The notes beneath the pieces are model-generated. The model was not told the origin of the DNA. It did no database searches and saw only the letters and a list, made by a program, of their open reading frames with translations. Shown here in pieces: positions 540-41,475 of a DNA stretch of 51,946 nucleotides. Source of the stretch: Guillardia theta CCMP2712 (taxonomy: Eukaryota > Protista > Cryptophyta). The stretch is from the NCBI RefSeq assembly GCF_000315625.1, contig NW_005434568.1, forward strand, positions 58,989 to 110,934. Reading direction: 5' to 3'. Each line of letters opens with the position of its first letter. Position 1 is the first letter of the stretch. Made by a program: the position numbers and the translations under genes.

Positions 540-880
540 TAGTCACAGTAAACCGCAGTATTGCTCACTGAGGCCGGACGAAGCTCACTGAGGCCGGACT
601 CGCCGCCGATCGGACGGCGTACGGTACGGGCCCGGGTATGATGATCATGCGCCGGACTCGAACTTGAAGACCTCGGACCCCCCGCCGCCCCCGGGGCCGG
701 GCAGTGCCGCCGTACCGTACGGTAGCGGCCTCGGCTTCCGGTCCCGGCCGGGACTCGGGAGTCACGGTAGTACCGGGCGGCCGATGCAGTACGGCCCGGC
801 GGTGACGAAGTACTCAGGCCATCACTATACATGATGGCTACCGTCATTGGGTACCGCAGAAGATGGAAGACCTCAAGTTG
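540..880. promoter_or_regulatory. GC-rich palindromic intergenic island 1
   Basis: CpG-dense non-coding tract: direct repeat GCTCACTGAGGCCGGAC (563, 583), AACTTGAA (661), palindrome TACCGTACGGTA (713-724), TCAAGTT (873). Regulatory role inferred. Confidence 0.5.
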
Positions 881-1248
881 TGAGTACCGCGGATGCTGGT
901 AGAAATTTTTTTTTCATTTATTTCCCAAGGGGTGGGGTATGACTAGTAGAAAGGGTGGGCATAAATGGAGGGGTATCTTGAAACACTACCCACCTTTTAA
1001 CTTGGTTTCATGTGTTTAGTAGGTAGGTGCTTCAGATATTTATCCCAACATCTAGGTGGGTACTCCTGTACATGAGGGGGTAGAGGTGATAGAATTCCAG
1101 TGAGAAGGGGTAGGGGTCACCTCGCGGGGGTGTAGAGTGGACTAGACCAGAACCTGCGATTAAGAGGAGGATAGGTAGGGTACTACTTTTTCTGGTACCG
1201 GTACTTTTACTATTGAAATACCCCGCCATATCCTAGAGTGTCCACGGT

Positions 1249-1262
1249 GGGGTATATACCCC
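1249..1262 (+). promoter_or_regulatory. TATA-like element inside perfect palindrome GGGGTATATACCCC
   Basis: 14-bp palindrome ~60 bp upstream of the V-ATPase G ATG, at the end of a GGGT-rich array. Confidence 0.55.
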
Positions 1263-1317
1263 TACCCATTCTTGAATGCGCAACCCCCTAGGCAAGGAGA
1301 GCAGCGGAGCGGCGAGA

Positions 1318-2475
1318 ATGTCCAACCAGCAGGGGATCGATCGGCTGTTGCAGGCGGAGCAGGAAGCGACGGAGACCGTGCAGCGAGCGAGGAAGGGTAA
1401 GACGATGGTGCTCGCTTGCCTGCTGCGTTGACAGTTGTACATGCTCGAGATGTTGTGAGGGATGGAGAGGAGTGTTCTTTGAGAGCTGCTTTCATAATGT
1501 CTGGGGTGTAAGTCGTGCATGTCAATGCTTGAAGTTGTGAATGTTGCGTGCATTGTTGCCTGGTGTTTATGATTCTGTGAAACATGAGAACAGTTGTTGC
1601 TGCGTTCACACCATTGAAGTGCTGATGAAAGACTAATGAAAACTCTGATGGCGCACCTGATGCAAAGTTGACGCAAGTCCAGTGCGGTGCATCTTTCATC
1701 CGCTGCTCATGATGATGATTTTTCTTGATTTTTCTTGATTTCATTTCTTCATGGAGTATCTGTATAAATCGAAAATGTGTCGTTCCCGTAATCCTTGCAC
1801 GTTTGATATGTGGCAATGAGAAAACAATCATGTTTGTGGATTTCTGTTGTTGGTAGAGGTGTAGCGTTGCGACAAGAAGCCATGCTATGTCGAGTGTCGT
1901 TGTATGTTGTTTGCCATGTTGAATATAGAAGTGTTGTACAAGCATGCTTTGTCTCTGAGCATGCGAGTGAATGGACAACGCGGCATCTTCTTACATGATT
2001 GCCTACAGCCAAGGCCGCTCGTATCAAGCAGGCCCGCGATGAGGCAGCGGAGGAGATTAACAAGTACAGACAGCAGCTAGAGATGGAGTACCAGAAGGTT
2101 CAGTCATCGGTGAGACCCTCGCACTCTCCGCCCTCCCCCCTGACGTCGATGCCGCAGGGGATGACCATCTCCGACAAGTCTGCTCGCTTGAACCAGGAGA
2201 CTGAGGGGCAGCTCATGGAGATCCGCAGGAGTGCCGAGGTTCGTTGAGGACAAGGAGGAGGGGAGGGGAAGAGGGAATGAAGAAGATAGGAAGGAGGAGG
2301 AGGGGAGGAGAGGCAGGGGAGAAGGAGATGGCAAGACAGGAGCGGGGGAGGGAGGGCCCCGGCCCGTGAGAAATGCGAGTGGAGGTCTGACTTGTTTGGT
2401 CAGGCGAATCGCGTCAACGTCGTGCGTCAGATCCTGGCGTGGGTCTCGTCGGTAGATACGAACCCTCCCAAGTAG
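1318..2475 (+). CDS. VMA10: V-type H+-ATPase subunit G
   Basis: Four exons (1318-1396, 2009-2109, 2158-2238, 2404-2475), all GT-AG and in frame: MSNQQGIDRLLQAEQEATETVQRARKAKAARIKQARDEAAEEINKYR..., ~110 aa, typical subunit G. AATAAA at 2516. Confidence 0.95.
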
Positions 2476-2663
2476 ATGCGAGTGAGGGATGAAAGCCGGG
2501 CGGGCCTTGGGACGGAATAAACCTTGGCTATAGCGTTTGTGGAAGGAACCGGGACACGATTCTTGCTCTCTTTCTTGTGTTGGTGCTCGCTGCTTGCAAG
2601 GTAACACTGAGAAGCCCTGAGGGCCTGGCTAGAGAGCAGGAGGGCGACAGCTCGTAGCTCCTC

Positions 2664-9189: not shown

Positions 9190-9545
9190 CTTGTAAAACT
9201 TCAAGTTCCAAACTCCCGTGAGAGTCACAGAGTCAGCCCGGGCCGCCGCCGCCGGAAACCGCCGGGCCCGGAACCTCCTTTACTCAACTCGGCGTTGCGT
9301 TATATACTTCGGAGCCGGGAACCTGAGCCTCGGAGTACGGGACCGTGAGTGAACGACTCAGTCGAACCGGCGTGGCCCGCCGGTGGCGGCGGCCCGGAGT
9401 CACTGGCAGCCGGCCGGGCCAGGCCAGGCCCCCGGCCCGGGGCCCGGCGCTCAGTGCGGCCCGGCCGGCGGCCGCGGCCCGCCGATGTCACCTTCCGAGT
9501 TCCGAGTTCCGAGACTCACGCCGCGGCGCCGCCCTACGTCGTCCC
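9190..9545. promoter_or_regulatory. GC-rich palindromic intergenic island 2
   Basis: AACTTCAAGTT (9197-9207), many CCGG/GGCC and GAGTCA/GACTCA words; lies between divergent SPT5 and Zn-cluster copy A1. Confidence 0.5.
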
Positions 9546-10089: not shown

Positions 10090-10593
10090 ATGCAGGGCGG
10101 ACTTCTGTCCACGCAGCCTTCGCTCTGTGCTAGCAGCAGCAGCCTCCATGGCTCCTGGTGCTCCCCCCTCGAGGACGCCATCTCCCACATGGTCGTACGG
10201 GCCGATGACCTCCTCTCCTTCATCGACTTCGCCGAGCTTGACGTCGATCTTGACGACCAACACTGCCTGGCAGCTTCGCCAGCGATGCAGGACATGGCAG
10301 TAGCGGCAGCTGCTCGGGAGCTACCGGAGGTCGACGACGCACCAGCCTCCCCAGCCATCGCGGCTGCTCAGCCAGGCGCGGTGGTCCGACCGCAAGAGCT
10401 TGCGCTGGCCGAGGACAAGACAAGGAGGAACTACACCAAACAAGCTTGCTTGGCGTGCAAGCGGAAGAAGCAGAAGTGCGAGGAAGGGAGGCCGTGCCAT
10501 CGCTGCATCAACGGGCTGAGGACATGTACGGACGTGGCACCGCGTCAGCGGAGGAGGCGGAGGGCGTGGGCTCGAGGAGTAACGCAAGGCTAG
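10090..10593 (+). CDS. Small Zn(II)2Cys6 (GAL4-type) transcription factor, copy A1
   Basis: CLACKRKKQKCEEGRPCHRCINGLRTC fits C-x2-C-x6-C-x5-C-x2-C-x6-C; start codon uncertain. Confidence 0.75.
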   Translation: MQGGLLSTQPSLCASSSSLHGSWCSPLEDAISHMVVRADDLLSFIDFAELDVDLDDQHCLAASPAMQDMAVAAAARELPEVDDAPASPAIAAAQPGAVVRPQELALAEDKTRRNYTKQACLACKRKKQKCEEGRPCHRCINGLRTCTDVAPRQRRRRRAWARGVTQG

Positions 10594-11374: not shown

Positions 11375-11460
11375 CGAGGACGAGAGGCCATGCCATCGCT
11401 GCGTCAATGCACACAGGAAGTGCACGGACGACGACACGGAGAGCGTGAAGAGGAGAAGGC
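11375..11460 (+). pseudogene. 3' half of a Zn2Cys6 gene (copy B2, Cys4-Cys6)
   Basis: 83/86 nt identical to the reverse complement of 20593-20678; encodes EDERPCHRCVNAHRKCTDDDTESVKRRR. Confidence 0.85.
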
Positions 11461-12833: not shown

Positions 12834-13412
12834 TCAAATACACAGATCAGCCTCCACCAGAGAAAGATCCCTTTGAGCCCACGCCCTCCGCCTCCTCCGC
12901 TGACGCGGTGCCACGTCCGTACATGTCCTTAGCCCGTTGATGCAGCGATGGCACGGCCTCCCTTCCTCGCACTTCTGCTTCTTCCGCTTGCACGCCAAGC
13001 AAGCTTGTTTGGTGTAGTTCCTCCTTGTCTTGTCCTCGGCCAGCACAAGCTCTTGCGGTCGGACCACCGCGCCTGGCTGAGCAGCCGCGATGGCTGGGGA
13101 GGCTGGTGCGTCGTCGACCTCCGGTAGCTCCCGAGCAGCTGCCGCTACTGCCATGTCCTGCATCGCTGGCGAAGCTGCCAGGCAGTGTTGGTCGTCAAGA
13201 TCGACGTCGAGCTCGGCGAAGTCGATGAAGGAGAGGAGGTCCTCGGCCCGTACGACCATGTGGGAGATGGCGTCCTCGAGGGGGGAGCACCAGGAGCCAT
13301 GGAGGCTGCTGATACTGCTGCTACTGCTACTGCTACTGCTGATGCTGATGAGATCACTAGTGGTGGTGGTGGTTGTGTTGTTATCATTGGTGGTCGTGTA
13401 ATGGCTTAGCAT
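12834..13412 (-). CDS. Small Zn(II)2Cys6 transcription factor, copy A2
   Basis: 192-aa ATG ORF with the same zinc cluster; ~435-bp core nearly identical to copy A1 in inverted orientation. Confidence 0.8.
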   Translation of the reverse strand: MLSHYTTTNDNNTTTTTTSDLISISSSSSSSSSISSLHGSWCSPLEDAISHMVVRAEDLLSFIDFAELDVDLDDQHCLAASPAMQDMAVAAAARELPEVDDAPASPAIAAAQPGAVVRPQELVLAEDKTRRNYTKQACLACKRKKQKCEEGRPCHRCINGLRTCTDVAPRQRRRRRAWAQRDLSLVEADLCI

Positions 13413-16218: not shown

Positions 16219-17300
16219 CTCAAAGTTAAGTTGAAAATCAGTACGACCACTAGTCACTCTTGCGGCTATCTCCGAGGCTCCGGCTGGCGGCGGGCCGGCC
16301 AATGCTAGCCGGTCGCTGCCCGAGGCAGACGTGACACCAGGCTGCGTGACTCTCTCGCTTCCCGGTAGTGTTTGCTCAAAGTTAAGTTAAAAATCAGTTT
16401 CCGAGCCTTCACTGTCAGTTATAAAAACATTTTAAACATTACTGTTCAAGGCTTCTCGATACTATGATAACCCGGGCGTTGACCGACTCGGACCGGGCGC
16501 CCCGGCGGCTGCGGGCCGCGCCGAGTCAGGCTGAGTGTCAGTGGTCACTTGTGACTCTGTGACGTCACGGCACGGTAGCCTAGTACTCACTCGGAGCGCG
16601 GCGCGGTGTGACTACCGTACCGTACCGGGCCGCCGCCGTAGCCGGGCTGGGCTCCGCCGCTGTGCCGCGCAGTGACCGTGCCCCTGGCACCGGGTGCCCG
16701 CCGCGATGATCGGAGCCTCACTTGAAACTTCCGACCGGCGGTTCCCGGAGTCCGGAACCGTGTCGAGCCTGACTCAGTCCGAAGCCTAGGCCCGGCGGCC
16801 GGCGGGGCCCGTCACAGTGATTCATTGAACTCCGACCGTACCGTACCTCCAAGGAAAGCCCGGCGTCCGAGTGACCGGTCAACGATGGCTGGGCTCAACG
16901 CGGCTGCCAGCGCGGCTGCCACAGGCTCCGACTTCCGTACGGCTCAGTCATGAGAGCCGGGCTCCCGGAGTCCCGTACTTTCACGGTACGCACGGTTAGC
17001 CGGGGCCTACCTAGTAGCCTCCCGGGTGGCAGGCGCGGCCCTCGGGCCGACAGGCCGGGCTGGGCCGGCCCTCACTGGGTGACCCGGTACGGTAGTACTG
17101 CGGCAGTAGCCTGGGTGGCCGCTGACTCTGTGAGGCGGCCCTCGGGCCGCCCCCCCGGCGGGGGCACGGCCAAGCCCCTCTGGCAGCCTGGCAGGGCCTG
17201 CCAGCCGCTGGCTCAGACTCCGGGAGCCCCCGTCACGGTCCGAGACCGTCCGATCACTGGCACCCGGCTGTCGGCCACACTCAGGGTGACCCCCTGAGTC
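16219..17300. promoter_or_regulatory. GC-rich palindromic intergenic island 3
   Basis: 24-bp direct repeat CTCAAAGTTAAGTT(G/A)AAAATCAGT (16219, 16376), GTGACGTCAC (16560), TGACTCA (16770), several ACCGTACCGTAC and CCGG words. Confidence 0.5.
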
Positions 17301-18412: not shown

Positions 18413-19130
18413 GTCAAGTTAGCGCTGCATCGCAAGCATACTAGAGTGGTGGTAAGAGATCCCCCGCAAGGAGTTGGCCATGGCGAGAATGCTACTGCGC
18501 TAGCGGCTGCCAGCACTTGCAAGCCTGAGCCCCTCCTGTGAATCGGCGACGTGATGCTTGCTAGAACGATCGTGCGTAGGGTACAAGACTTGGTATGCTA
18601 CAGCACGGGTGCTGTCGGTGTTGTTGGTAGGATCGGAGGGTGGTAAGAGGACCCCTTTCTGCCCACTCACTCTCGAATCACGGGGGCCTCCAGACTGCAA
18701 ATTACGGGTGCCGCACGGGTACGGCGGAGCAGCTGGGGCCGCATATCACCTGTCAGTCCTCCTCTGACCCCATTCTGCTGATGAAGCGCATCGTTGTTTT
18801 CGGGTCTCTCTCGTTTTTCGAGTTTCACGGTCATTCGGTTGGCTGAGGACACTGCTGCTTTCTCAGTTTCGAATGCTCGAATACCAAGGCAGGTCAGGAT
18901 CCACAGTTTTAGATAGTTCTGTGAGTTTGTCTTGTCTGAACCAAGGTCCCATGGTCCAGATTCGTCATGCGCTATCTACAGCATGCTCCGATGCAGGTCG
19001 GTTGGGATGCACTGTGAATCCGTTGGCGATCCAATGCTTACAAAAAGAACGAGCGATCATCGTGATAGCTCAACGCGCGACAACCTGGCTGTGCCGTGAG
19101 CTCCCAATGTCGGCCCAGTTGGTAGAGGAT

Positions 19131-19416
19131 GCACGTCTGCTTCTTCTGGCGGCATGATACACAAGCTTGCTTGGTGTGTTTGTTGTTTGTGGATCTGTGC
19201 ACGTTCAAAGTCGGCAGAGCTGCTGCTGTCCCTTCCTCCTCTGCCTCACACGCTGGTACCGACGTAGACTCGAACTCAGCGTGCTCGTCGTTGCTGCTCG
19301 GCTCCAGGTCTGCGAAGTCTATGAACGAGGCGAGGTCATGGGGCTCAACGACGATTTCAGAGATGATCAAGGGGGAGAGGAAGCCGGTGGCATTAGTTAT
19401 TTGTATATCACTTATC
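19131..19416 (-). pseudogene. 5' half of a Zn2Cys6 gene (copy B2, up to Cys3), with internal deletions
   Basis: 19212-19365 matches 20798-20951 (1 mismatch) and 19131-19187 matches 20678-20734; homology stops right after CVSCRQKKQTC. Confidence 0.85.
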
Positions 19417-25547: not shown

Positions 25548-27490
25548 TCTTTTTAATTCATTTTTGGAAGTGTTGGATTAGTAGTGAAACTGAAATGTTT
25601 GCGCAGAACCAGCGCGCTACGGTGTGAGATGTTAGCGCTATGCTGTTGTAGGTGATGTTCCAAGCAAGTACACGCAGGATGAAGAAGGACGTAATACGCA
25701 CGAGGTATTGCATGGTCGAATTACATTACTCATGTTCCAATTACAATGAACACAGGAACAAAGTGAAAATGTACAATACATATCATCACATGTACTGAAT
25801 ATCTGTTGCTAAACTTCATTCCATACACCTCAGCTCAACTCACTTCTACTCAGAACCGTCGTGATGGTGCCTGTCTCGCTTCTTTTACGAATCCATGATG
25901 AACATGAAGCTTGCCCTGCTGTGCTTCCCTGAGAAGGCGGTATCCATTTGTGTTGCTAAATCTTGTCAATCATGCGTCGAGGCGAAGCCAATGATTCATT
26001 GATTGATTGCCATTCTGCAAGTTTACCTCATGAACACCGTTAACCATAGGAGTCCTCACCATGAACACTGACATTCGCATCGCAAGTTCGAATATCAAGT
26101 TCAAACCGCTTTCAGTGCCCTCACGGTCCATGCAGCCTCCAACCCCATTCCTCAAGTTTGAAGGTCGTGACATTCCTGAGCTGCTGAGGCATCAATCCTC
26201 TTGTCTCACAATGGGAAGCACGAGCCACGGGTTGATGTGCACCGAGCATCAGGTCGAATGGTGTTTGACTCAACGTTCATCGCGCGGGGGGAAGGGAGAA
26301 CCTTGAACCCGCAACGGTTGGAGCTAATCCTGTGGGGGTTTTAAAGCACGTCAGCAATCTAGGAAATGGGGGGTGGGTAGTAGTTTGGCTGCCTTATTTT
26401 ACTTGTTGGGACATGGAGAAAAAAACTAAAAACAAAATAGGGAACTGGGAAGGGCTGGCGGACTTGACCGACAGACTTCGCGAGGAACGACAAGCCAGTC
26501 CGTCAGCCAGCTGACGATCAGGATTGAAGGAAAGAGCGGAGGAGTGAACGCAGGATACAAAAAAGGGTCGCGGGCCAGAGCACTGAAAATCAGGCGAAGA
26601 AAATCATCTGATACGGAACGAAGGGCATGAGCATTGTGACACAGCCAAAGCTATGCCGTCGATATCGGTCGAGGATAGAAGACACGGCACTAAGAAGACA
26701 GAAAGAATTAGAGTTGCGCAGTTGTGAGCAACGAACAGCGACAGATGTAATGATGTATTCAAGATGATATGCAGAAGCAAAGTGGAGGAAATCTAGTGCA
26801 ATGCAAGGTAGCTAGCACTACAGGTACATTGGAAACGTGAGGAAAGCAAAACAGAAACTAGAAAACATGAAGGGAAGCAAGCCTGCAAAAGGGTAATGCA
26901 GGAGGCTTGAGCAGGAGACAGACTCATGGAGTGTTGACTTGTGAGATCAACCAATAAGGTGATCAACATCCGACTAACCAAGACAAGGCTGAGACTTGAG
27001 CTTTGACGAGAGATGCGGTAAATCGGGCTGATTAAGATCGACACAGCAATACACAAAGACTGAGCCGCAGAAGAATTGAATCAAAAGTACTGAGGTAGGC
27101 CAAGGATTCATAAACTCGTATCCTGCCTGGCTGTCTTACTTCACTCGGTGCTGTTGTTGGAGTTGAACATGGATGGCAATCGGTTACTGTTAGGCCTTGA
27201 CGTGCTGATGACAGGCTCAGGAGTGCAGAGTCTGGTCAAGATTATGCACGTGCGGTCGTCTCCAGCGACGGGCTCAAAACCAGTCGTTGTAAGCCTTCTT
27301 GTTTCATTGCGCTACAAGACCATCATCAGCGTCACAATTTCGCAGCATGGCTCCTAGTCCACATACTGATTTTGAGTAAAAGTTAAGTTTAAAAGAGTGC
27401 TAACGAGAACCGGCACTGCTGCTCCCCAGGAGTAGAGGCCGACAAAAAGAAGAGGCAGTCACTTGGATTGCAGATGCCTTGATCAGCTTC

Positions 27491-27563
27491 TGGGCTCGCC
27501 GTGGATCGAACACAGGACCTTTAGATCTTCAGTCTAACGCGCTCCCAACTGCGCCACAAACCC
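27491..27563 (-). tRNA. tRNA-Phe (GAA)
   Basis: GGGTTTG-TG-GCGCAGTTGGGAGCGC-G-TTAGACTGAAGATCTAA-AGGTC-CTGTGTTCGATCCACGG-CGAGCCC-A folds into a cloverleaf. TATATA ~32 bp upstream; T5 terminator ~45 nt downstream. Confidence 0.97.
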
Positions 27564-28071
27564 ACTGCCTCGATTGCACCTAGGGTCATTGCAGTATATA
27601 TAGTAGATAGTCAAAGGTGGGGTAGTCGGGGAGGGGTGAGAAGGGGTGGGTCGGCGAGGAGGTGGGGTGGACATGGGGTTTGTGACTTTCCGGCTCCAGT
27701 TTCATGCGTCGTACGGGATCGAACAGAGATCGTGTCCCCTCCTCCTCCTCCTCCTCTTCACTCTCCCTCTCTTGTTGCTCCCTCCTCTACCAACCAGCCT
27801 CTTGCTATGACGACATCTTCCTGTCTTCTCTCCTCCTGGCTTCATTCACTTGATTGGCTGCCTACAAACTATCCTCCTCTGTCTCCTGTGCTCGTTGCAA
27901 CTTGATAGGAGTATGATAGGAATGTCGCCAGCCTTTTGATGCGCTTGTACAATATGCATTCGTCTTTGACTTTCTTTGGATCTGTTGATCGTTACAACAT
28001 TCATGCCTAGTTTTGCCATCATCTCTCCAAAACTCTGTTTGTCCATGACAGTTCACCGTACCAGGCAGGAC

Positions 28072-29303: not shown

Positions 29304-29574
29304 TCAGACCTGTGTGGCTTTGTTGTTCTTCTTGGCAAACTTCTGGTTGCGGATGAACTTGGGGTCCATCTGACAAAACGTCAGTCATGGTGAGAAAAGA
29401 CGGTACGTGCTGCAGTGCCAAGACCAAAGAAAGAGAAGCTAAATGGGAATGAGAACGTGCAGGCAGGCTTACCCCCTTGGTAGAGATCTTAGTGCCAGTT
29501 TTAGGGCGCTTAATTCCATTCCTGTGCGCTTTGTAGTTCTGGTTGTGATTGGTGTGATTCTTGGACTTGGCCAT
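29304..29574 (-). CDS. RPL29: 60S ribosomal protein L29 (eL29)
   Basis: Exons 29473-29574 and 29304-29369: MAKSKNHTNHNQNYKAHRNGIKRPK...KG/MDPKFIRNQKFAKKNN. An acceptor just upstream of the ATG suggests a 5'UTR intron. Confidence 0.97.
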
Positions 29575-30267
29575 CCCTGCTGAACCATATCAGAGAAATA
29601 CAGACAGAACATACATCTCCGCAATCAGATATTGAACACATGTCCATATAAATTCAACTATATGTCCATCCCTGCCTCTGCAGGAGCTCAGCCTAACTTG
29701 CGCTGACTAGTTCTTCGTATCGCTGTTACTAGGTCTCATATGTTCAACTTGCAGGCAAAGGAAAATCATACATGGAGTAAACAACAGTTTGCACGCCAAT
29801 TCATCAAATCCCAAATGTACATCCAAGATTCCGCTTCAAAACAAAATCCCCTCAGAATTTTTCTTACAGTTCCCCTGAGTATGATAGCTGTGGCCATTTT
29901 TGCCATCACAATCAGCCAAAGAATTTTGTGTGTATCATCGTAAATGTGTCTCTCGTAGCATTCATCATATTTGAAACCAGAAATCCAACCATCAAAGCTC
30001 ATGCCATGCAGTCAGGGCTGATTATAGGAACGCATGCGGTTCCAACAACAGCACAACACCTCCAGGCTAATTTGCTTCCCTGCATATCGATATTCTTGAG
30101 CTATCACCGCAACAAAGCAGCAAACAGCTCATAACTTGTGATCAATCTCTTTTCACATCTCTCATCTTCTTCTCTCTCTCGTCGCATGCGGCGCATACAT
30201 CCCTCCTCCTCCTCTCGCCATCTCACCTCCTGCTCGAGCGTGCACGCGGCCAACCTTCTTTTTTTTT

Positions 30268-30432
30268 AAACGGTTAAATCGTAACCGTTTCCCATGACGG
30301 CCCGCCCCGGCAGCCGGAACTTGGGAACTCAGTTGAGTGACCTCGGGCCGCCTCCGGGCTGCTGCGGTGTGCCGGGCCCGCGCACTTGAAGTCCTCAAAG
30401 TTGAGTTAAAGATCAGTACCGTGTGACTTCGA
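30268..30432. promoter_or_regulatory. Short GC-rich island 5 / bidirectional RPL29-SMN promoter
   Basis: 9-bp inverted repeat AAACGGTTA-n5-TAACCGTTT (30268-30290), plus AACTTGG, ACTTGAAG, AAAGTTGAG and CCGGGCCCG words. Confidence 0.55.
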
Positions 30433-30468
30433 GTGAAGCATCCGTGTGAACGAACCAACTCGATCGGC

Positions 30469-32619
30469 ATGGCTGCACCGGCCGCTAGCTTCGACTGGGA
30501 CGACGCGGAGCTCATGAGAGCATGGGAGGCATCACGACGAACCTACAACGTGAGCAGTACGCAGCCAGTGAAGGGATCTGTGATGAGTTGCTCATATCGT
30601 GATGACATCATGGCATGCTTGACATAGCATGCCTACAATGTTTCTTGTATAGGCTGGAAAAGCTGGAAAGCGGGTGAAAGTTGAGGGATCGAGACAGAGA
30701 AAAATCAATCAGTTGAAATCGTATCAAAGAAGTCAGTTAGTAGATGGATCATTGAGCTCTGTGTTTGCTCCAACAGTGTTAGAACGTGGTTATGATGAGC
30801 CATACCTAGATGTCTCAATGCTGATTTTGCTCGCTGAAGATGTGTTGCCTTCACTGCTTGCAATGACATGTCGATCAGGACGAAGAAGCCCTCGAGGAAG
30901 AAGAGGCCCTGCTGTACCCAGAAGAGGAGGAGGAATATGAAGGGGACGAGGAAGAGGCGGCCAAGGTCGGCGAGCAGGAGAGGACAGTCGAGACTTGGGC
31001 AGGGGCTGTGAATGGATATCAGGTAAGACATCTGTGCTGCGAATCTTTCATCCTCTCAACGTTCGTCGCTGACCTCGCGAGCGTCGGCAACATCCTCTCG
31101 TCCGTCTCTTGTCCGGCTCACTCCTGCCTGCAGGAGTCAGCTTCCTACCCTGCACCGCACATGGCAACTGAGATGAGCTGGTGCCGGCTGCCCTCTGTGT
31201 TCTCCTCTCACCAGAGCTCCGATCCTCCAGGGCCAACACCTACCCAGGAGCCCACACCATGCCTCCTCCTACCGGCTATCCTCCCATGCCCTCTTACCCC
31301 CCAGCCTTTCCTCCTTATCCCTCCTACCCCTACTCTCCATACTCGATTCCTCCTCCCTACATGCACGAGCTTGCCCTTCAGCAGGATGCCTACTACAGGC
31401 GAGCATGCCGGAGCTGCTGCATGTGGATGAGGCTCACGAAGTTTACAGGGCACCTGCGTCCTTTCACGCGCAGGAGAGTCAAGCTCGGGGAGGAGGGAGG
31501 AGAGGAGCGGCAGGTTTGCTCAGCACCATGCGTGTGCTCGACGTTAACGTTCCGTTGTGCTCCCAGCAGCAGCTCAGCATGGAGGATACGAAACAATGGA
31601 GCAGGCCAACTTGAACGGGAGGGCAGCGGATGATGAGGGAGAAACATCCACGGAAGGATCCGGTAGTAGAAACCTTAGAGAATGAAGAGGAATGCTTGCG
31701 AAGTTTTCGAACTGAGTGTCTTGCTTGCCAGGCGTGAAGTTCTATGAAGATGGAGTCCCTCTCACAAAGAGGGAGGTCGAAGAACAAGCGTACCCCGGTG
31801 ATTTCACTCGTTCCCCTACACAGCTCCTCCTCAATCCCTTCGCCTCCCAATTTGCTCTTCCGCCACTCTCCTTGGCCAACGGTTTCGTCAATCCTCTTGT
31901 CCTTGCTTGTTCTTGCGCTCTTGGTTACCGACTAAGGAGAATTTGTTCTGATGCCTCAGAATTTCTCGACACCTCGATACCTCAAGATAGACCGCATGCC
32001 AGGTCATTCAGCCTCCATGTTCCACTTCCTCTTTTGCTCTTCCGCTCTCCTCCATCCATTCATTCCTCAATATTTCTTCATTTCCCTTCCTTTTTCCGTC
32101 ATCTTGCTATTCAGGAAAAATCTTCGGAAAACGTATTCTCCCCCTGGTATGGCGCGTTCGAAAGGTAACGAGGTTTCCTGCAGCCTGCTCGTCTGATCCC
32201 TACCTCCCTGCACTCCCCCAACCTGACCTCCCTCACGTCATCCACTTTCAGCAGGCCCTGTCGATGTGCCTCTGCCTCCTGTAGTCGACGATGAGGACGA
32301 GGACTTGTCTAACCTCCTGCTTGCATGGTACGCCTGTTGCACTCTGCCACTATCCCACTTCCTGTCCCTTATCCGAACTCGGCAATTCGCAATCCCTCGC
32401 AGCTTTCTCGAACATTCTCAACCCTGCTCTCCATCATACCACTACCGCTCCCCTCACCTCTCCCGGTCTTTCCCTCATCGTGTCTCAGGTACTACACGGG
32501 CTTCTACACCGCCAAATATCAGGTGCTCTCCTTCCTGCAGCATCCGATCCGCTCCTCGCGGTGACACAGGGCAGATGAGGAGGAGCAAAACATACAGCTC
32601 GGGGTCAGGCGAGCCATGA
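30469..32619 (+). CDS. SMN: Survival motor neuron (SMN) homolog
   Basis: N-terminal Gemin2-binding motif (FDWDDAELMRAW), Pro/Tyr-rich middle, C-terminal YG box split by an intron (DEDLSNLLLAW/YYTGFYTAKYQ). Internal exons approximate. Confidence 0.85.
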
Positions 32620-32991
32620 GAAAATCGAGAAGCGAGGGAGGGAGAGAGAGAGGAGGAAGGAGGGGACTGGGAGGAGGCTCTGCTGGAACCATCCTGGGTA
32701 TTTGACGGAAAGGTGAGGGTGGGTTGTGGGAGGCGCAGGGCGGACCAGCTGAAGCAGTAGTAAATACTTCTTGGCTTGTCTGATCTGCATTCCGATCGAG
32801 TCGTTTCACATTGAGAAGCCCAAGGACGACTTCTTCTCATCCGCCGAGTTGGACGAGGCAGACTGTCACGAATTTGAGTCATGCCGCGCCATGCCAACCG
32901 ATACCTCCCTCTTTCTCCTCTCCATCTTCCTCTCCCTCTCGATCTCTCACTCTCCTTCTCCCCTCCCTGATTCTATCCTTCACCCTCGCGC

Positions 32992-34910
32992 CTAGCTGCT
33001 GCCAAATCCTCCCTCCTCTACCTTCGCAAAGTCCGTCGCAGCGTCCATTGTTAGCTCATCCTCCGTGAGTAGGCGCGCAACCTTTGCAAGCTGCTGGTGA
33101 GGAGGTGGACAGGGCAAGACAGGGCAGGACAGGGCAGGACAGGACGGTAGAGAAGGGGAGGGGAGGAGAGAACAGCACAGCACAGGGCAGGAGCAAGGGG
33201 AACGAGGCACTGGTTACCTTGGGGCTGATGGTGAAAGTATTGCAGCCCCGAGCAGCGAGCACGGCAAGCTTGTGAAGACTTGAGCGGTGGCGTTGAAGCA
33301 AGTCAAATCTCACCTGGTCCGCGTCGCGGATGGAGGCGACGAGTACTCTTGTCTTGGAACGCATCCCATCGACGATCTTCGTGGCCGTTATGCCGTTACA
33401 TGTCAAGCCTCAAGTCAGATCTCACCTTCTGCATGTCGACAACAGATTGCATCCCATCCCTTCCTGCATCGTTCATCCTTCCAAGATAAGGAGCCACGTA
33501 CTCGGCTCCTGCACTGACGCTCGTGATGACCTGTAAGATATTCCATGAGGGTAAGGCGGTTCGGCTAGAAGGCACGGAACTGAAGACAAGAGAAGGAAAA
33601 GAGACAGGAAAGGGAAGCAAGCAGAGAAGGAGGAGGAGGCAGCAGACTCAAAAGAATGACCCCGAAACTATGAACAGCAAGGGAGTAGAGTTGAGGAGGC
33701 AACCTGATGAGGACTGTAGCAGGCAGTTGTACACACTCGGATCCCCAAGTTTGACATCATGCTTGCTGCTTCGATTCCCGCGAACGTGAGAGGAACTTTG
33801 ACGACAACACGAGAGTCGAGGTTCGCCAGCCGAATCCCGTTGTCAACCAGCTCGTCGACCTGCACAGCACGGTCATTTCTAACTCCCAGCTGACTTGCGA
33901 TCGACCTTGGTCCCCCACGTCTGGCACATGAACTCCTTGGAGCCCAAGGCAAAAGCTGTTGCTGCAAGATCTTGGAGCGCGTGATGCGAGCAAGGCACTT
34001 TCGCACGTTCCAGCTAAAAGAGTCAACCTCAAATCATGTTGAGGACAAGAAGAATGGCGGAGTCGAAAGGTAGCCGGGTGCAGGATCGGGAGGAACAACC
34101 CGTCGGATGAGGGAAGCGAGGATAGAGCAGGGAGCGTTTCACTGACCAGCAAGGGATTAGTCGTGACGCCATAGAAGATGCCGAGGGGTAGGAGTTCCGC
34201 CATTTCGTTCAAGTTTGCGGTGTCCAGGAACAGGCGGCAATCACCCTGTCACAATGGTGAGCTCAGCCATGCGTGATCCTCTTCTCCACCTTCTTCTCCG
34301 TCATTGATGGAGCCGGAACGTCGAGCGTGTGCTGATAGAAACAAGTCGGTCAGCAAGCATCGCAAGAAAATCCGTGAAAATGAGAGGCCGGGCGGGTCAG
34401 TTCAAACACAGGGTTGCGGATCAGGGAAGGAGAAATGATTGTTAATTTTCTCGAGGATAAGATAACATTTGATAGGAAGAGGTGCGCATGATCTCAAGGA
34501 CGGCATGCTGTCACTTCACCTGCTTCCATAGAGACACCTTGTCCTTGGCTGCAGCAGACTTGCTCGATGATGCTGGCATCGTCCACTGAGTGACAGGTCG
34601 TTTTGTTGGCAGAGGATGATCCTCTTGGTCTCCGTTCATCGGAGTGCTGCATCGAATTCTCGTCTTGCCCATGTCAGTCTTGCGGCGACCGGCTTGGCCC
34701 AGCGCAACATTCCTAGCGAGCAGGGACGAGGACAAGGAACTGAAACACAACCTGATGGCATGAACAGCGTCAGGGTACCGAGAAGGAGGGACATGGCATA
34801 CAGAGGTACCGGCCTGAAGCAGGTGTCTTAAGTTCAGCATGTGAGAGGCTCACTGCCCATGCCGCCAAGTTCACAGCCATCGTCAACCAAGCCAGCCGCA
34901 TTCCTGCCAT
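32992..34910 (-). CDS. Transaldolase-superfamily class I aldolase (FSA/TalC type) with N-terminal targeting sequence
   Basis: FLDTANL, GVTTNPLL, VVVKVPLT (Schiff-base Lys), YVAPYLGRMND, VLVASIR, TFTISP motifs across exons. Putative exon 1 (34854-34910) is MAGMRLAWLTMAVNLAAWA. Confidence 0.85.
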
Positions 34911-35099
34911 CTTACGCCTCTTCCTCAAGGGTACTCCCACTCTGACCACCCACCTTCAATATTCCATGAAATGTAACTATACTATACCGGTAGTCATGGT
35001 ATGATGACACTACCCTACCCTATCTTCTCGATTATGGAATTCCGCTGAAGCTTTGGCGTGATCGGATTTCAAGAGCTCATAACCGGTTTAATAAGGTCA

Positions 35100-35350
35100 G
35101 GCTCTCTTCAGGCTTGGCCAGGACTTTTATTCCTTAGGCCCCCGGCCGGGCGGCCCGCCGGGCGGCCCGACCGACCGAGCCGCCAGCGGGGCGGGCAACG
35201 GGTACTCAAGGGCCTCCAGCGACTCCCTTGAACTTGAACATATTTTAAAACTGGAAGGGAGAGGATTCAGAATTTGAAGTCGCAAACAACGGAACCAGCT
35301 CTGAAATTTGAAACTTTGAAACTCGCGGGAGTCGTCAAGCTTTGTGAAGG
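35100..35350. promoter_or_regulatory. GC-rich island 6
   Basis: CCGGCCGGGCGGCCCGCCGGGCGGCCCG core, TTGAACTTGAAC (~35228) and GAAACTTTGAAAC; between divergent aldolase and ODC genes. Confidence 0.5.
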
Positions 35351-36748
35351 ACGTACCAGCGTACCCGTCCGTTGAATGCGGATCCTTGGTCTTCGGGGTG
35401 GGTAAGGGTAGTTTATGATGAGGGGTGGGTGATGAGAGTTGGAGCTAGCACAGACACGAGGGGTGGGGCATGTACGGAGAAATTTGAAAAGGAAACACTA
35501 TGAAAATGGGGGTAGGGGTCACTTCTACAGCAGGAGATCCGCCATTTGTAGGGTGGGGTGGGATGATCGATTGTTGGGGGTGGTATCCGGCTTTACTCCC
35601 TCTCTCAGGTGATATATGGACGAAAAGGAGGACCCTGGGTGGATTCCTGGGTAAAGAAGGGGTGGAAAGGTGATCGGGTAAGGTTGAAAGGTCGATGGTA
35701 CTACTACCTGCCAGCACAGTGGAATGGTGGGGCGGATGGGCTAAGTGAGGTGAAAAAGGTGGGTAGGGTGAGTCAAAAAAGGGGTAGGGGTGCTACTAGC
35801 ACGATCTCCAAACTTTTATTCCCCAAGTTTGGTGACATCCTGATCAGAGCTTCAATCAAGTTTCAACAGATGACAAGATAATTTGAAGCTGGTTCCCAAA
35901 ATTCGACTGAACATTTTGAAGTATTTTCATTACTGGGGCGGACCTGGATCCTATCATTTTATTCCCCAAGTGAACTACCCTACCCATCAAGGTACCCTCT
36001 ACTGGGTCTTAAAATTCAACCCCACCCCCTATATTTCCCGATAGTTTGTGGACACCCCCGGGGAGTTGCTCGCGTAAAAGAAATTCGAGTACCCCTAGCG
36101 TCAACAACCAGCGCAGCCGCACGGTCGGAATGGCATAGGGCACAAGGTACACATTTTCATAAGTAAAGCTATAGCTTGCTTCCTGGCAGGATATACTGCA
36201 AGGGAGCTTTTGTTGGGGGACAGAAGAAGGATTACCCCCCTACCCCAAGAATCAGTACTCCCCTGCACGGGCTGTTTTTTTGTCACCCCTTCTTCCTTGA
36301 TCCCATCAAACCCTACCCCAAAATATCTTACCCCTACCTACCCTCCGCGTCGATTGGGGTTCTGAACCCTACCCTATCTGATATTCCCCAAATCAACAAA
36401 ACCGCCCCAGAGGGGGGAGTCCAGTACCCCACCCCGATCAGGACACCCTACCCTTACTCCAACACCCCTACCCCCTAGAACTCTCACCCCCACCCCACGT
36501 GCGTCACCGATTGCGTCCTGAGTCTTCCCCCCAAATCCCTTCATCCCCTCCCCCCCCGCCTCCGCCGCTGTTTCCTCCTTCCCCCGTCTTCTTCCCCCAC
36601 TTCGCGTTTGCTCCCGGCACTTCACCCTCCTCCTCATTAAAAGCCAAGCTCCCCTGCCTTCTGCTCCAGCACACTCCCGCTCGCTTCTTTGTCCTGCACA
36701 TCTTTCCTCCCTCGGAACTCCTTGTTTGATATTCCACGTACCTTTGAA

Positions 36749-38269
36749 ATGGATCAAATCATCACCTCCAACATAGAACAGATGAACATCGTTGCCATCG
36801 ACGAGATCGAAGCGATCTCCGAGACCATCATCACGCCTCAGCAAGTCTTCGAGGAAACCATCCCCGTTGCTGTCATTCAGAAATCTGCCCCCGCGGAAGA
36901 AATCATCACATGCGACGATGATTGGGGCGTTTCCAAGTTTGTTTACTCGAACAGCATTGATGGAATCTTAGCTGAAAACAAAGTCCGTGTGCTGCCGGCT
37001 GGCTACAACACCGCTGAGCTCATTCTCGACATCTCCGCGGAGTCTGAGGAGCAGGATCCTTTCTACATTGTTGATCTCACTACCGTTCTCACCAAGCTCG
37101 ATGACTGGAAGACTCTCATGCCCCGCGTGAAGCCATTCTATGCCATGAAGTGCAACAACGATGGTATCATCTGCAAGATGCTTTGCGATGCTGGGTGCGG
37201 ATTTGACTGCGCCTCCAAGGCGGAGATTGAGGCTGCGCTTCAGTTTGGCGTCTTGCCCGATCACATCATCTATGCCAACCCCTGCAAGCAGGAGAGCATG
37301 CTGCGCTATGCTCGCTCAGTGGGAGTCAAGAAGATGACCGCGGACAATGTTGAGGAGCTACACAAGATTGCGAATTGCTTCCCTGAAGCCAAAGTCGTCC
37401 TTCGCATTGCTGTCGATGATTCCAAGTCCGTCTGCCGTTTCAACTCAAAGTTCGGTGCTGCGCAGCACGAATGGGATGTCCTCCTGAGGACCGCCAAGGC
37501 TCTCGACCTTGATGTTGCAGGCTTCAGCTTCCATGTTGGCTCAGGATGCGGAGATCTCAAGCCCTTCGCCGACGCAGTGGCTGCAGCCAGGGACGCCTTC
37601 GACCAAGCTGAGGCTTACGGATTTTCCCCTTCCATCCTGGACTGTGGTGGAGGGTTTCCCGGGACCAATGACGGGGCCTTCTCTTTCCACGAGGTCGCCA
37701 GCACGATCTCGAATGCCATCGACCATTTCTTCCCCCCGTCTTGTGGAGTTCAGATCATCGCTGAACCCGGCAGGTACATGGTAGCAGCAAGTCACACCTA
37801 CTCAGTGTCTGTCATCGCCAAGAGGCAGCTCACAGCAGCACAGCTAGCTGATAGTGCGGCGATCGAATCCTTCGGATCGCGCAGCGATAAGGATCACGAT
37901 GGGGCTCACGATTCTGGCTTCAAGAAGGCAGAAGAGGTACGGGACTCCAACACGCCCGAAGTAGCTCTATACATCAACGACGGATGTTACGGCTCCTTCA
38001 ACTGCATCGTGTTCGACCATGCCATCATCACTCCCAAGGTCCTCGGAACCAAGTCTGCCCTTCCCTTCGATACGCCGTCCAAGCTCTTCGGACCCACTTG
38101 CGACAGCATCGACGTGGTCATGCCTTGCACTCTCCTTCCCCAGCTTGATATCGGCGACTGGATCTGGTTCCCCAACATGGGCGCTTATACTCGCTGCGCG
38201 GCGTCTCGCTTCAACGGCCAGGGAGCCTTCAACATCCATTACGTTTGGGCTGGAGTGCCGTCCAAGTAG
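36749..38269 (+). CDS. ODC1: Ornithine decarboxylase (fold III PLP enzyme), single exon, 506 aa
   Basis: PFYAMKCN (PLP lysine), GFDCASKAEI, IIYANPCK, SFHVGSG, LDCGGGFPG, IIAEPGRY, NDGCYGSF, FGPTCDSID (catalytic Cys) and NMGAYT all intact. First in-frame ATG at 36749. Confidence 0.95.
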   Translation: MDQIITSNIEQMNIVAIDEIEAISETIITPQQVFEETIPVAVIQKSAPAEEIITCDDDWGVSKFVYSNSIDGILAENKVRVLPAGYNTAELILDISAESEEQDPFYIVDLTTVLTKLDDWKTLMPRVKPFYAMKCNNDGIICKMLCDAGCGFDCASKAEIEAALQFGVLPDHIIYANPCKQESMLRYARSVGVKKMTADNVEELHKIANCFPEAKVVLRIAVDDSKSVCRFNSKFGAAQHEWDVLLRTAKALDLDVAGFSFHVGSGCGDLKPFADAVAAARDAFDQAEAYGFSPSILDCGGGFPGTNDGAFSFHEVASTISNAIDHFFPPSCGVQIIAEPGRYMVAASHTYSVSVIAKRQLTAAQLADSAAIESFGSRSDKDHDGAHDSGFKKAEEVRDSNTPEVALYINDGCYGSFNCIVFDHAIITPKVLGTKSALPFDTPSKLFGPTCDSIDVVMPCTLLPQLDIGDWIWFPNMGAYTRCAASRFNGQGAFNIHYVWAGVPSK

Positions 38270-38431: not shown

Positions 38432-39376
38432 TCATCCGATGCTGTCTTTCTGAAATTGTAGCTTAAAAGCACGGAGCAATCCTTGATATTCGCCGTTCAC
38501 TATCCCACCATACTGCAGCAGAGATAATGTGAGAATCACAATGCTGGCCTTAAGGCACCCACCTTCTGATCCATTTTCAGGTATTTCAGCACGGACCCTG
38601 AATTTCTTTGCAATGCAAACGCGATTTCCCTGCATCTGGTTGGAAGAAACTGGTCAGTAAGACAAGAAACAAAGCTCGCATAAGCGCACCCGTCTTTCTC
38701 TATGTCGTTGCCTGAGATGTCAAGCTTCGTGAGTGACATATTGAATTGGAGTGCGTTGGCGAGGTAACGGGCCCCTTGATAGCCGATACTCTCATTCACC
38801 AACCCCAAAGTCTTTAAGTTGGTGTTGGCAGCGAGCGCAGCTGAAATAGTCATACACCCTCCATCCCTTATGTCATTGCCATCAAGAAACAATGTCGAGA
38901 TGTCCTGCAACGACTTCGCCAGGTATTTCCCTCCCGACACCCCGAGAAAGCAGTTTCGGATGTGCACTGTGCTCAGACTGCTGGCAGCCTGGTAGTGCTT
39001 GATGATGTCGATCACATCTGAGCCGTTGGTCGGCTCATTCTGCCATGTGATGGCCACGACCACCCCCCGCTGCAGTGCCTCCTGCGTGGTAGCCTCCTTT
39101 AGGGTGCCGGGTACGATTACCCGCACGACTCCTGATCCGTCTTCCTTGGGAGGGAAACTCTCGACCACCCACTGCACAGCGAGTCAGTGCGAACATGCAA
39201 CGCATGCGAGCCGTGACCTCGGGGAAGTTCTGGGATGAGATGATGCCTGTCAGCTTTTCACACCGCATTGGGCGCTTCCCGCTTTGAATCGCGTTGAACA
39301 GTTGGACCGAAGTCATGGCTTCTGTCTCGCCGTTCTCACCCTTTCTTGCACCTGACAGCACGGTGAGCCTTGGCAT
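38432..39376 (-). CDS. Leucine-rich repeat protein (RNI-like/NLRC3-type repeats)
   Basis: LFLDGNDIRDGG, LKTLGLVNESIGYQGARYLANAL, LTKLDISGNDIEKDG; four exons join in phase. Confidence 0.8.
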
Positions 39377-39553
39377 GAAACAGGTAGCTCTGTGAAGACA
39401 CTAGTTTCCAGGGGTACTCTGAGCCCCCCCTTTTTTAAACCCCCCCCCTAGGGTTAGGTTAGGATGTTTTTTTGGTGGAAAGTGTATGTATCTTTATAAC
39501 CCTGTTTTATTTTTTTTTTAGATAAATACGCCGGAGAAATTTATATTATTTTA

Positions 39554-40358
39554 ANNNNNNNNNNNNNNNNNNNNNNNNNNNNNNNNNNNNNNNNNNNNNN
39601 NNNNNNNNNNNNNNNNNNNNNNNNNNNNNNNNNNNNNNNNNNNNNNNNNNNNNNNNNNNNNNNNNNNNNNNNNNNNNNNNNNNNNNNNNNNNNNNNNNNN
39701 NNNNNNNNNNNNNNNNNNNNNNNNNNNNNNNNNNNNNNNNNNNNNNNNNNNNNNNNNNNNNNNNNNNNNNNNNNNNNNNNNNNNNNNNNNNNNNNNNNNN
39801 NNNNNNNNNNNNNNNNNNNNNNNNNNNNNNNNNNNNNNNNNNNNNNNNNNNNNNNNNNNNNNNNNNNNNNNNNNNNNNNNNNNNNNNNNNNNNNNNNNNN
39901 NNNNNNNNNNNNNNNNNNNNNNNNNNNNNNNNNNNNNNNNNNNNNNNNNNNNNNNNNNNNNNNNNNNNNNNNNNNNNNNNNNNNNNNNNNNNNNNNNNNN
40001 NNNNNNNNNNNNNNNNNNNNNNNNNNNNNNNNNNNNNNNNNNNNNNNNNNNNNNNNNNNNNNNNNNNNNNNNNNNNNNNNNNNNNNNNNNNNNNNNNNNN
40101 NNNNNNNNNNNNNNNNNNNNNNNNNNNNNNNNNNNNNNNNNNNNNNNNNNNNNNNNNNNNNNNNNNNNNNNNNNNNNNNNNNNNNNNNNNNNNNNNNNNN
40201 NNNNNNNNNNNNNNNNNNNNNNNNNNNNNNNNNNNNNNNNNNNNNNNNNNNNNNNNNNNNNNNNNNNNNNNNNNNNNNNNNNNNNNNNNNNNNNNNNNNN
40301 NNNNNNNNNNNNNNNNNNNNNNNNNNNNNNNNNNNNNNNNNNNNNNNNNNNNNNNNNN
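39554..40358. other. Assembly gap (N run) with low-quality homopolymer-rich flanks (~39420-39553, 40359-40705)
   Basis: Run of N bordered by poly-G/C/A/T tracts. Confidence 0.99.
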
Positions 40359-41049
40359 GGGGGGGGAAAAATTTTTTTGCCCCCCCCCTTCCAAAAGGGG
40401 TTTTTGGGGGAAAAATTAAAACCCCTGGGGGCGCGGGGTCTTTGGGGAAAATTTTTGGGGAAAAAAAAAAAACCCTTTTAAATTTTTTCCCCCCCCCAAT
40501 GGGGGGCTTCCCCCCTTTTTAAAAACGGGGGTAAAAAAATGGGGGCAAAAATTAAAGGGTTTTTTTTTTTCCCGTTTTTTCCCCCCCTTTTTTTGCCCCC
40601 TAAAAAGCACGGGGGGGCCCTTGGCAAAAAAAAAAAAAAATTTTTGGGAAAAACAAATTTTCAGAGGGTATTTTGAGCCCCCCCCCCCCCCCCCCCCCCT
40701 CCCCCACCGTACAGCCATAGATTGTATCATGTGGGAACATGAGGAATACTTGGTACTCGAGATTAATAGTTTGCAAAAAGGTTGATGCCTCTCAGTAACA
40801 TTTCTCTATGAGAAACTTCTTCTTCACAAACAGCGCCTGAAACATTCGATCTTCTCAACGTCATGAAGCCCAAGTTGAAACCCATCACTCGTCGATGGTT
40901 TGCGCTTTGTACAATTTGTTTGTTATGCACTTACAGCATTTGAACGTTTATCGTCTTCGTGCTCACATGACTTCCCTCCCTCCCTCCCTTCCTCCCTCCC
41001 TCCCTCCCTCCTCCCTCCCTCCCTCCTCCCTCCTCCCCTCCAATCATGT

Positions 41050-41475
41050 CACGGCCGTTGATCCTGACAGTGGCCCTCATCCCCTGATGTCCCGGACCGT
41101 ACTGAACTTGCCGCAGCGCCCGGCGCGGCGCCCGGGCCCCGGTGAACGTCCGATCCAGGTCCGTAATCCGATCAGAGTCGCCGGAGCGGCCTTCAACCTT
41201 CACTGAGTCAGTCGGACGCCAGCTGACTCTGCCCGGCCGCGGCGGCCGGGCGTTCGTGAGTCCGACCGTTCCGGGACTGAGAGTCGGAGGCCGGGCCGCC
41301 GGCCGGGCTCGGCTGCCAGAACGTCGGACTCCAAACGTCACGGACGTCAACCGCCCGGGCCCGGGCGGCGGTCCCAGCGGCGACTGAGTCACAGTGACCC
41401 GTCACGGCGGCCGTCCGATCACCCGGGGCCGCACTCAGCGGCAGCGGCGCCGCTCGCGAGTCGGCGGCTGCGGCT
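41050..41475. promoter_or_regulatory. GC-rich palindromic island 7
   Basis: TGAGTCA (41204, 41385), perfect 18-bp palindrome CCGCCCGGGCCCGGGCGG (41351-41368), CCGTAC, GAACTTG, CCGATC; upstream of DOP1. Confidence 0.5.

Follow-up and report, generated by a model that had tools for sequence, protein, structure and literature searches.

Non-coding CpG-dense islands with a shared vocabulary of short words, probably promoter cores, in the nuclear DNA of Guillardia theta, a cryptophyte

A 51,946-nt stretch of nuclear DNA from the cryptophyte alga Guillardia theta CCMP2712, hereafter the window (scaffold JH993070.1 of assembly GCA_000315625.1, positions ~58990-110935), contains seven non-coding, CpG-dense blocks. 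These blocks, islands 1 to 7 in window coordinates, had been flagged in a first-pass annotation as a class of recurring islands that share short motifs and no common sequence. All seven are present where they had been placed, and composition together with a map of six G/C-only hexamers used as an island caller (CCGGGC, CGGGCC, CCCGGC, CGGCCC, CCGGCC, and CGGCCG) sets them apart as one discrete class. The hexamer map marks exactly the seven islands in the window, the only extra spot being a trivial one of 7 words at 2358-2506, which belongs to the V-ATPase G gene (last exon or 3' untranslated region, UTR). The window genes are those called by the Joint Genome Institute (JGI). Two contigs fetched from JH993070.1, reached via the ornithine decarboxylase (ODC) protein and the 167-residue open reading frame (ORF) at 10090, are 100% identical to the window at 26782-48269 and 90-20593. 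The ODC ORF (36749-38266) has as its top named relatives GUITHDRAFT_78760 from G. theta and a protein from Hanusia phi. Two further annotated loci of 21 kb, JH993155.1 (L003) and JH993007.1 (L004), were reached via two paralogous ODC genes; the same caller finds seven further islands on them, which brings the set to 14 islands on three scaffolds.

Four islands of the window separate divergent genes, as the first-pass annotation had proposed. Island 2 (9190-9545; GC 0.71, CpG observed-to-expected ratio (o/e) 1.13, 38 G/C-only words in 246 bp) lies between SPT5 (minus strand, ATG at 8205) and the gene of the 167-residue Zn2Cys6 protein (plus strand, ATG at 10090). Island 5 (30268-30432), with a G/C-word core at ~30298-30380, has the dimensions of a minimal bidirectional promoter core and lies between the genes of ribosomal protein L29e (minus strand) and of a 105-residue protein (plus strand, ATG at 30470). 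Island 6 (35100-35350; G/C-word core 35138-35170) is flanked by transaldolase on the minus strand, with exons reaching ~34868-34906, and by ODC on the plus strand, with its ATG at ~36749. The ODC frame is open from this ATG over 506 residues (window 36689-38269), and the Hanusia phi orthologue spans it fully with 92% identity; the JGI model GUITHDRAFT_78760 has 469 residues and has probably been cut short or given a spurious intron. Island 7 (41050-41475; GC 0.725, CpG o/e 1.16, 32 G/C-only words) lies between a leucine-rich repeat (LRR) gene (minus strand, ATG at 39316) and Dopey (plus strand, ATG at ~41884). An assembly gap of 804 N (39555-40358), identical in the public assembly JH993070.1, falls between islands 6 and 7 and inside neither, island 7 starting 692 nt to its right. 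Since the gap separates the LRR gene from island 7, the left neighbour of this island, and only that, is uncertain. The gap flanks (~39420-39554 and ~40359-40705) are stretched homopolymers that look like low-quality read ends, and the ORF spanning the gap (39546-40394) is an artefact.

The three other islands had been credited with a gene start on one side, which does not hold for island 3. Island 1 (493-880, begun at 540 in the first-pass annotation; GC 0.65, CpG o/e 1.15, 22 G/C-only words, 6 GTACGG) occupies a tandem interval between a CTU1-like gene (plus strand), whose stop codon ends at 434, and V-ATPase G (plus strand), whose JGI coding sequence begins at 1318; the CTU1-like C-terminus is our own reading of the sequence, beside the JGI calls. 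Island 3 (16219-17300; GC 0.66, 40 G/C-only words, 5 GAGTCA, 8 GTACGG) is an orphan without annotated start on either side: the nearest one on the left is 2.8-3 kb away, and the right neighbour is a minus-strand gene with its 3' end at 17489. It comprises a small block at ~16260-16350, an AT-rich spacer with a TATAAA motif, and a main block at ~16460-17300. Within the minus-strand ORF next to it (17489-18412), a 15-nt tandem repeat (17548-17774; 14.7 copies, 92% matches) would, if translated, yield a repeated pentapeptide. Island 4 (21780-22980; GC 0.585, CpG o/e 1.03) lies upstream of a minus-strand Zn2Cys6 gene (ATG at 21085, Zn_clus domain), with no right neighbour assigned; the caller resolves it as two sub-islands, 21814-22186 and 22449-22836, on either side of a 260-bp AT-rich spacer. 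Both island 3 and island 4 thus have a two-block build with an AT-rich spacer, and both span more than 1 kb overall. Pfam analysis of the ORFs left of island 3 (13.4-16.2 kb) and right of island 4 (23-29.2 kb) returns nothing above threshold; the sub-threshold hits are DUF7769 (PF24964; E = 0.005, with 17 bits where the cut-off is 27) and, on an ORF at 19.0-19.4 kb, DAAP1. The otherwise unannotated 23-29 kb stretch carries a tRNA-Phe(GAA) gene (27490-27564, minus strand), found by Rfam (60.7 bits) and by ARAGORN.

In composition, the seven islands have a GC content of 0.57-0.73, a CpG o/e of 0.92-1.16, and 7.6-15.3 CpG per 100 bp, as compared with a GC content of 0.53 and a CpG o/e of 0.73 for the whole window. 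Taken together, CpG o/e is 1.05 in the islands and 0.70 in the rest, TpG/CpA o/e is 0.89/0.85 against 1.12/1.13, and TpA o/e is 1.01 against 0.55. The sequence criteria of Gardiner-Garden and Frommer for CpG islands (length ≥ 200 bp, GC ≥ 0.50, CpG o/e ≥ 0.60) are passed by six of the seven, island 5 being only 165 bp long as first delimited; with a GC of 0.53 and an o/e of 0.70, the genome's bulk comes close to passing as well, so that they hardly discriminate, and it is the o/e contrast of 1.05 to 0.70 that is meaningful. Tetranucleotides diverge more sharply: CCGG has an o/e of 2.56 in the islands and 0.43 in the rest, GGCC 2.18 and 0.48, and GTAC 2.81 and 0.73, while GCGC and CGCG stay at ~0.5 in both. 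The strongest k-mers found de novo in the islands are G/C-only and 100-375 fold denser per base than outside (counts inside and outside: 52 and 5 for CCGGGC, 26 and 1 for GGCCCGG, 15 and 0 for CCCGGGC). G/C-only runs of at least 8 nt make up 23% of the island bases, with blocks of two or three identical letters as their preferred units. An explanation by GC content alone is ruled out by the contrast of CCGG and GGCC with GCGC and CGCG and by a GC-matched comparison, in which the G/C-only words are 12-35 fold denser in island windows than in non-island windows at equal GC.

The vocabulary extends beyond G/C-only words. Against 500 dinucleotide shuffles of the islands, AACTTGA occurs 6 times versus 0.18 expected (z 13), GAGTCA 17 versus 1.25 (z 14), TGACTCA 5 versus 0.19 (z 11), and CCGTAC/GTACGG 19 versus 3.0 (z 9); z values are 10 for CCGG, 8 for GGCC, 8 for TGATCA, and 4 for CCGATC, and bare CGATC shows no enrichment against the same shuffles. 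On L003 and L004, where words containing A or T played no role in calling the islands, GAGTCA is enriched 4.9 fold (P = 3e-4), GTACGG 10 fold (P = 2e-6), ACTTGA 4.2 fold (P = 3e-4), and GTCAC 5.1 fold. The word list of the first-pass annotation is borne out against shuffles, with one amendment: TGATCA is absent from the seven islands of L003 and L004 and thus does not replicate there. For other cryptophytes, the sequence covered was limited: at the ODC locus of Baffinella frigidus (L005, 21% N), clusters of G/C words correspond to a tandem satellite and a local duplication and do not follow the island grammar, and the environmental cryptophyte contigs L007-L010, which carry the same polyubiquitin, hold only short upstream sequence. 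The Baffinella satellite, at 18400-19150 near the ODC gene, is an array of GGGTCGGGAAATGATGAATC units unrelated to the islands. As regards the ubiquitin gene, a third ubiquitin repeat lies directly upstream of the annotated di-ubiquitin ATG at L006 2773-3001 (equivalent to L003 upstream of 15213), and this di-ubiquitin gene (L003/L006) is probably a longer polyubiquitin than annotated.

The islands are also rich in short direct repeats within 60 nt (98 versus 13.8 for k = 8, and 12 versus 0.1 for k = 12), which suggests growth by micro-duplication. This strong excess, and the many micro tandem duplications inside the islands, would be expected if the islands were mainly a mutational by-product, created by GC-biased gene conversion at promoter recombination hotspots and by replication slippage, the words themselves having no function. 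Recombination hotspots sit at promoters in many eukaryotes without PRDM9, and so, probably, do the islands. Yet the G/C runs are non-random, CCGG, GGCC, and GTAC being 2.2-2.8 fold over expectation and GCGC/CGCG at about half of it; the A/T-containing GAGTCA, GTACGG, and ACTTGA are co-enriched and replicate on the other scaffolds; and in the rest of the sequence GGCC, a word free of CpG, is avoided (o/e 0.48). A mainly mutational origin appears improbable. It would moreover explain how the islands arose and not their location-specific use, and as such it is compatible with a promoter role.

Palindromes are another conspicuous component. The four cited in the first-pass annotation (713-724, 22041-22055, 22064-22075, and 41351-41368) are exact, and further examples occur at 22053-22065 in island 4 and 41231-41251 in island 7. 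Palindromes of at least 10 nt number 62 versus 11.3 in shuffles (5.5 fold), with 16.2 per kb in the islands and 1.7 per kb outside. Across all 14 islands, 114 are counted versus 46.6 under a Markov-3 model (2.4 fold) and ~81 under Markov-4 or Markov-5 models. Since the excess over the latter is only ~1.4 fold, palindromy is largely a property of the words themselves, and the vocabulary mostly accounts for it without an independent higher-order feature. Exact AP-1 and CRE cores with extended palindromic flanks are found, for example, at 22041-22055, 41202-41212, and 16559-16568. The assignments to AP-1/bZIP, SBP, and Zn2Cys6 sites are putative, resting on motif resemblance. One fact related to them is the presence of three small Zn2Cys6 genes within the window. 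Two of these genes are carried by an inverted duplication (10137-10573, plus strand, and 12875-13311, minus strand; 99.1% identity), and the third lies at 20543-21085. Further duplicated pieces are 19212-19365 with 20798-20951, 11375-11460 with 20593-20678 (inverted), and 19131-19187 with 20678-20734.

While the words are shared, the sequence is not, as the first-pass annotation had stated. All-against-all blastn comparison of the islands returns no match longer than 26 nt, and blastn of the islands against the whole window yields matches within islands only. Tandem Repeats Finder (TRF) reports micro-arrays of 2-4 copies in the islands and no satellite or tandem array, and no copies align to a common consensus as those of an interspersed repeat would. 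The islands contain no ORF of at least 120 residues lying wholly inside, and neither Rfam nor the tRNA scan matches any of them, tRNA-Phe being the sole match in the window. A spliced-leader gene was considered as well, and the G. theta spliced-leader sequence (PMC5619915) finds no match within 3 mismatches. The single alignable piece common to islands is an element of ~25 nt, TCAAAGTTRAGT (a 12-mer) followed by ~13 nt, at 30395-30420 (plus strand) in island 5, with further copies at 16220, 16376, and 21779, all on the plus strand. The 12-mer has 5 matches versus 0.27 expected, and islands 3 and 5 share 92% identity over 24 nt by blastn. This element, common to islands 3, 4, and 5, is what could be said for the islands being decayed copies of one transposon, satellite, or repeat family. 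Against such an origin stand the blastn and TRF results, which rule out a repeat family or satellite, and unrecognized exons or non-coding RNA genes are ruled out by the ORF lists, Rfam, the tRNA scan, and the RNA contigs, from which islands 3, 5, and 6 are absent. Both possibilities are already largely refuted, and we give them next to no weight. Just outside the islands, on the gene side, GGGTA and GGGGTGGG form clusters (929-1263, 35395-35676, L003 8078-8412, and L004 12674-12749) that are mostly in sense orientation to the downstream gene and in the opposite orientation left of island 2.

The position of the islands relative to genes is far from random. Annotated gene ranges make up 49% of the sequence analysed on the three scaffolds, though merely 76 of the 6689 island bases fall within them, in line with the initial description of the islands as non-coding and interrupting no gene. 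They occupy 8/8 divergent, 3/4 tandem, and 1/9 convergent intervals, that is 11/12 intervals containing a 5' end versus 1/9 convergent ones (Fisher p = 0.0004), a contrast somewhat inflated by the shorter length of convergent intervals. Annotated 5' ends flank 11 of the 14 islands. Neighbouring islands are 4.8-8.6 kb apart, close to the 5-9 kb first noted; this spacing is that of gene pairs and not of an independent periodic element, and a genome "punctuation" is not supported. Motif counts at shuffle level, alignment as a repeat family, translation as exons, and random placement were all looked for, and none was found.

A chromosome-level role, as replication origins, insulator or boundary elements, or terminator-promoter modules, would have its clearest cases in the orphans at 3' ends. 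At island 1, island 3, and the island at L003 1516-2068, a gene transcribed toward the island has its stop codon within ~5-190 nt of the island's beginning, and islands 3 and 4, at more than 1 kb, exceed what a minimal promoter of the island 5 kind requires. Adjacent 5' ends nonetheless fully explain most islands, and the orphans adjoin long stretches devoid of annotation, in which the JGI calls may simply have missed genes; a role of this kind is improbable. The orphan islands may mark unannotated genes or have another role.

RNA data bear on the promoter reading at three islands. Contigs of three RNA-type runs (X2, X4, and X6) were placed on 29850-35849; they are spliced, which identifies them as RNA. 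At island 5, the L29e-side contigs terminate at 30199, 30219, and 30233, while the first exon of the plus-strand gene to its right starts at 30449 in X6, with a donor at 30549 and introns of the GT..AG type. In X4 this exon would start at ~30394, as estimated from sequencing depth (39.4/141.7 x 200, ~56 nt), so that its beginning is put at 30449 or earlier, probably close to 30394, which would place the TCAAAGTTRAGT copy of island 5 at the start of the plus-strand transcript. The two starts, ~160 bp apart, enclose the G/C-word core, and divergent starts less than 1 kb apart, as at bidirectional promoters, are thus found here (30233 versus ~30394-30449). The last ~40 nt of island 5, as delimited in the first-pass annotation, already belong to a 5' UTR, the block being otherwise confirmed. 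The RNA contigs that include the L29e region reach ~660 nt beyond the annotated coding sequence to the edge of island 5 (29574-30233), so that there is either a leader of unusual length or, upstream, an exon or gene that the annotation lacks. One RNA joint on the same stretch, at 31393-31444, skips 50 nt with TA..TT ends and 6 ambiguous letters, all others being GT..AG; a shifted alignment or a non-canonical intron could account for it.

At island 6, the transaldolase introns read CT..AC, which assigns them to the minus strand, and the contigs stop at ~34868-34906; depth is 0 over 35050-35849, including the whole island, in X2, X4, and X6. The core of island 3 (16400-17300) contributes 0.00 of the sampled words in ten RNA-type runs as compared with 0.69-0.94 in DNA runs, words from the Dopey region serving as a control (0.64-0.76 in those RNA-type runs). 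The raw RNA-seq run X23 contributed only 15 reads on 29850-35849, too few to be informative. The examined islands are untranscribed gaps bounded by transcript starts. RNA contig ends at islands 5 and 6, together with annotated 5' ends, make the islands coincide with transcription start regions, the starts being located approximately; islands 2, 6, and 7 are candidate bidirectional promoters by their ATG positions.

Composition, the reserved vocabulary and its replication, the avoidance of gene ranges, the tie to 5' ends, and the lack of island sequence in RNA assemblies together make it likely that the islands are untranscribed RNA polymerase II promoter cores of the G. theta nuclear genome, dense in factor sites and mostly bidirectional. 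The initial suggestion of CpG-island analogues or multi-factor hubs fits their 5'-end position and the untranscribed gaps between starts. Each island would be a block of 150-1200 bp with three kinds of content: G/C-only runs made of CC/GG blocks (CCGG, GGCC, GGCCCGG); short, often palindromic words resembling sites of dimeric factors, namely TGA(C/G)TCA, GAGTC inverted repeats, GTAC-core CCGTACGG, and GTGACGTCAC; and A/T-richer ACTTGAA and TCAAAGTT elements at the gene-proximal edges, where transcripts would begin. Transcription would start at the island edges and run outward, the island itself remaining untranscribed. The CpG content implies that the islands may either escape CpG decay or be continually rebuilt, and the mixture of words could arise by micro-duplication or slippage of site-sized units, a process that would produce a shared vocabulary without a shared sequence. 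We infer that the islands bind factors, are depleted of nucleosomes, and have their exact start sites at their edges. An unmethylated state is suggested indirectly by the CpG o/e of 0.70 and the TpG/CpA o/e of 1.12 outside them.

Several observations weigh against the promoter reading. Three of the 14 islands, namely island 3, L003 1516-2068, and L003 7476-8031, have no annotated start beside them; L003 1516-2068 is a typical island of a convergent interval, starting directly behind the stop codon of COG5. Conversely, one tandem interval with a 5' end, L003 13238-14752, is devoid of an island. For several genes, the annotated ATG is 0.4-1.4 kb away from the edge of the island, and the RNA evidence covers islands 3, 5, and 6 only. 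At island 5, the strand of the transcript ending at 30233 is taken from the L29e annotation and not from a splice junction. At the left edge of both island 3 and island 4, TCAAAGTTRAGT is oriented inward, which does not suit a simple start-site element. Lastly, the CpG o/e of 0.70 outside the islands amounts to a mild depletion only.

A more far-reaching proposal is that a genuine CpG-island system, with a sequence code reserved for it, arose independently in G. theta. GGCCCGG, GAGTC, and GTACGG would be kept out of the rest of the genome, concentrated by micro-duplication, and read by dedicated proteins such as CGG-reading Zn2Cys6 or CXXC-type proteins and bZIP dimers, and the islands would be generic two-way promoter and boundary modules, the orphans at 3' ends included. 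We regard this as rather unlikely, though less so than the mutational and chromosome-level explanations. For the islands as promoter cores, there are practical uses: the six-hexamer caller is a handle for annotating promoters and missing genes in G. theta, the restricted vocabulary could help to choose promoters for transformation constructs, and, with the existing G. theta ChIP-seq, the origin and reading of CpG-rich islands can be studied outside animals. In agreement with the first-pass annotation, which knew of no functional description of such elements, none was found in the literature searched for such islands, for G. theta promoters, or for its CpG islands or methylome, and the class is apparently undescribed for cryptophytes.

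The putative promoter cores of G. theta can be compared with several known systems. They share with bZIP site clusters (AP-1 TGA(C/G)TCA, CRE TGACGTCA, and Maf-type extended palindromes) exact AP-1 and CRE cores, a likeness in motif sequence alone; unlike in such clusters, the GAGTC half-sites of the islands occur at several different spacings. Like the divergent promoters and nucleosome-depleted regions of yeast, island 5 is a short untranscribed gap (~160 bp) between divergent starts, and as in compact-genome promoters the same intergenic block, where genes stand in tandem, also adjoins the 3' end of the upstream gene. However, the yeast regions are A/T-rich and carry poly(dA:dT) and sites for general regulatory factors, whereas the G. 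theta islands are G/C-rich and some exceed 1 kb.

A further resemblance is to the CpG or non-methylated islands of vertebrates, like which the G. theta islands behave given their CpG o/e of 1.05 against 0.70 outside. Both are GC-rich blocks of a few hundred bp with the expected CpG frequency in a CpG-depleted bulk, lie at gene 5' ends, are often bidirectional, include orphan members, and have no sequence common between islands. The host, however, is a cryptophyte alga, the likeness is one of sequence footprint, and the CpG depletion of the bulk is mild. The vocabulary differs as well: in G. theta it is restricted, favours words of CC/GG blocks, disfavours GCGC and CGCG, abounds in GAGTC and GTAC palindromes, and shows no depletion of TpA. 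Moreover, vertebrate start sites lie inside the island, whereas the G. theta island core appears to be untranscribed. To our knowledge, sharply delimited CpG-island-like promoters are textbook features of vertebrates and rare elsewhere. The sponge Amphimedon has a convergent, vertebrate-like methylome with CpG-rich unmethylated promoters; there the methylome has been measured, while in G. theta, where CpG-island-like promoters would likewise have an independent origin, the comparison is one of sequence footprint. Such promoters in a cryptophyte would represent a convergent promoter architecture.

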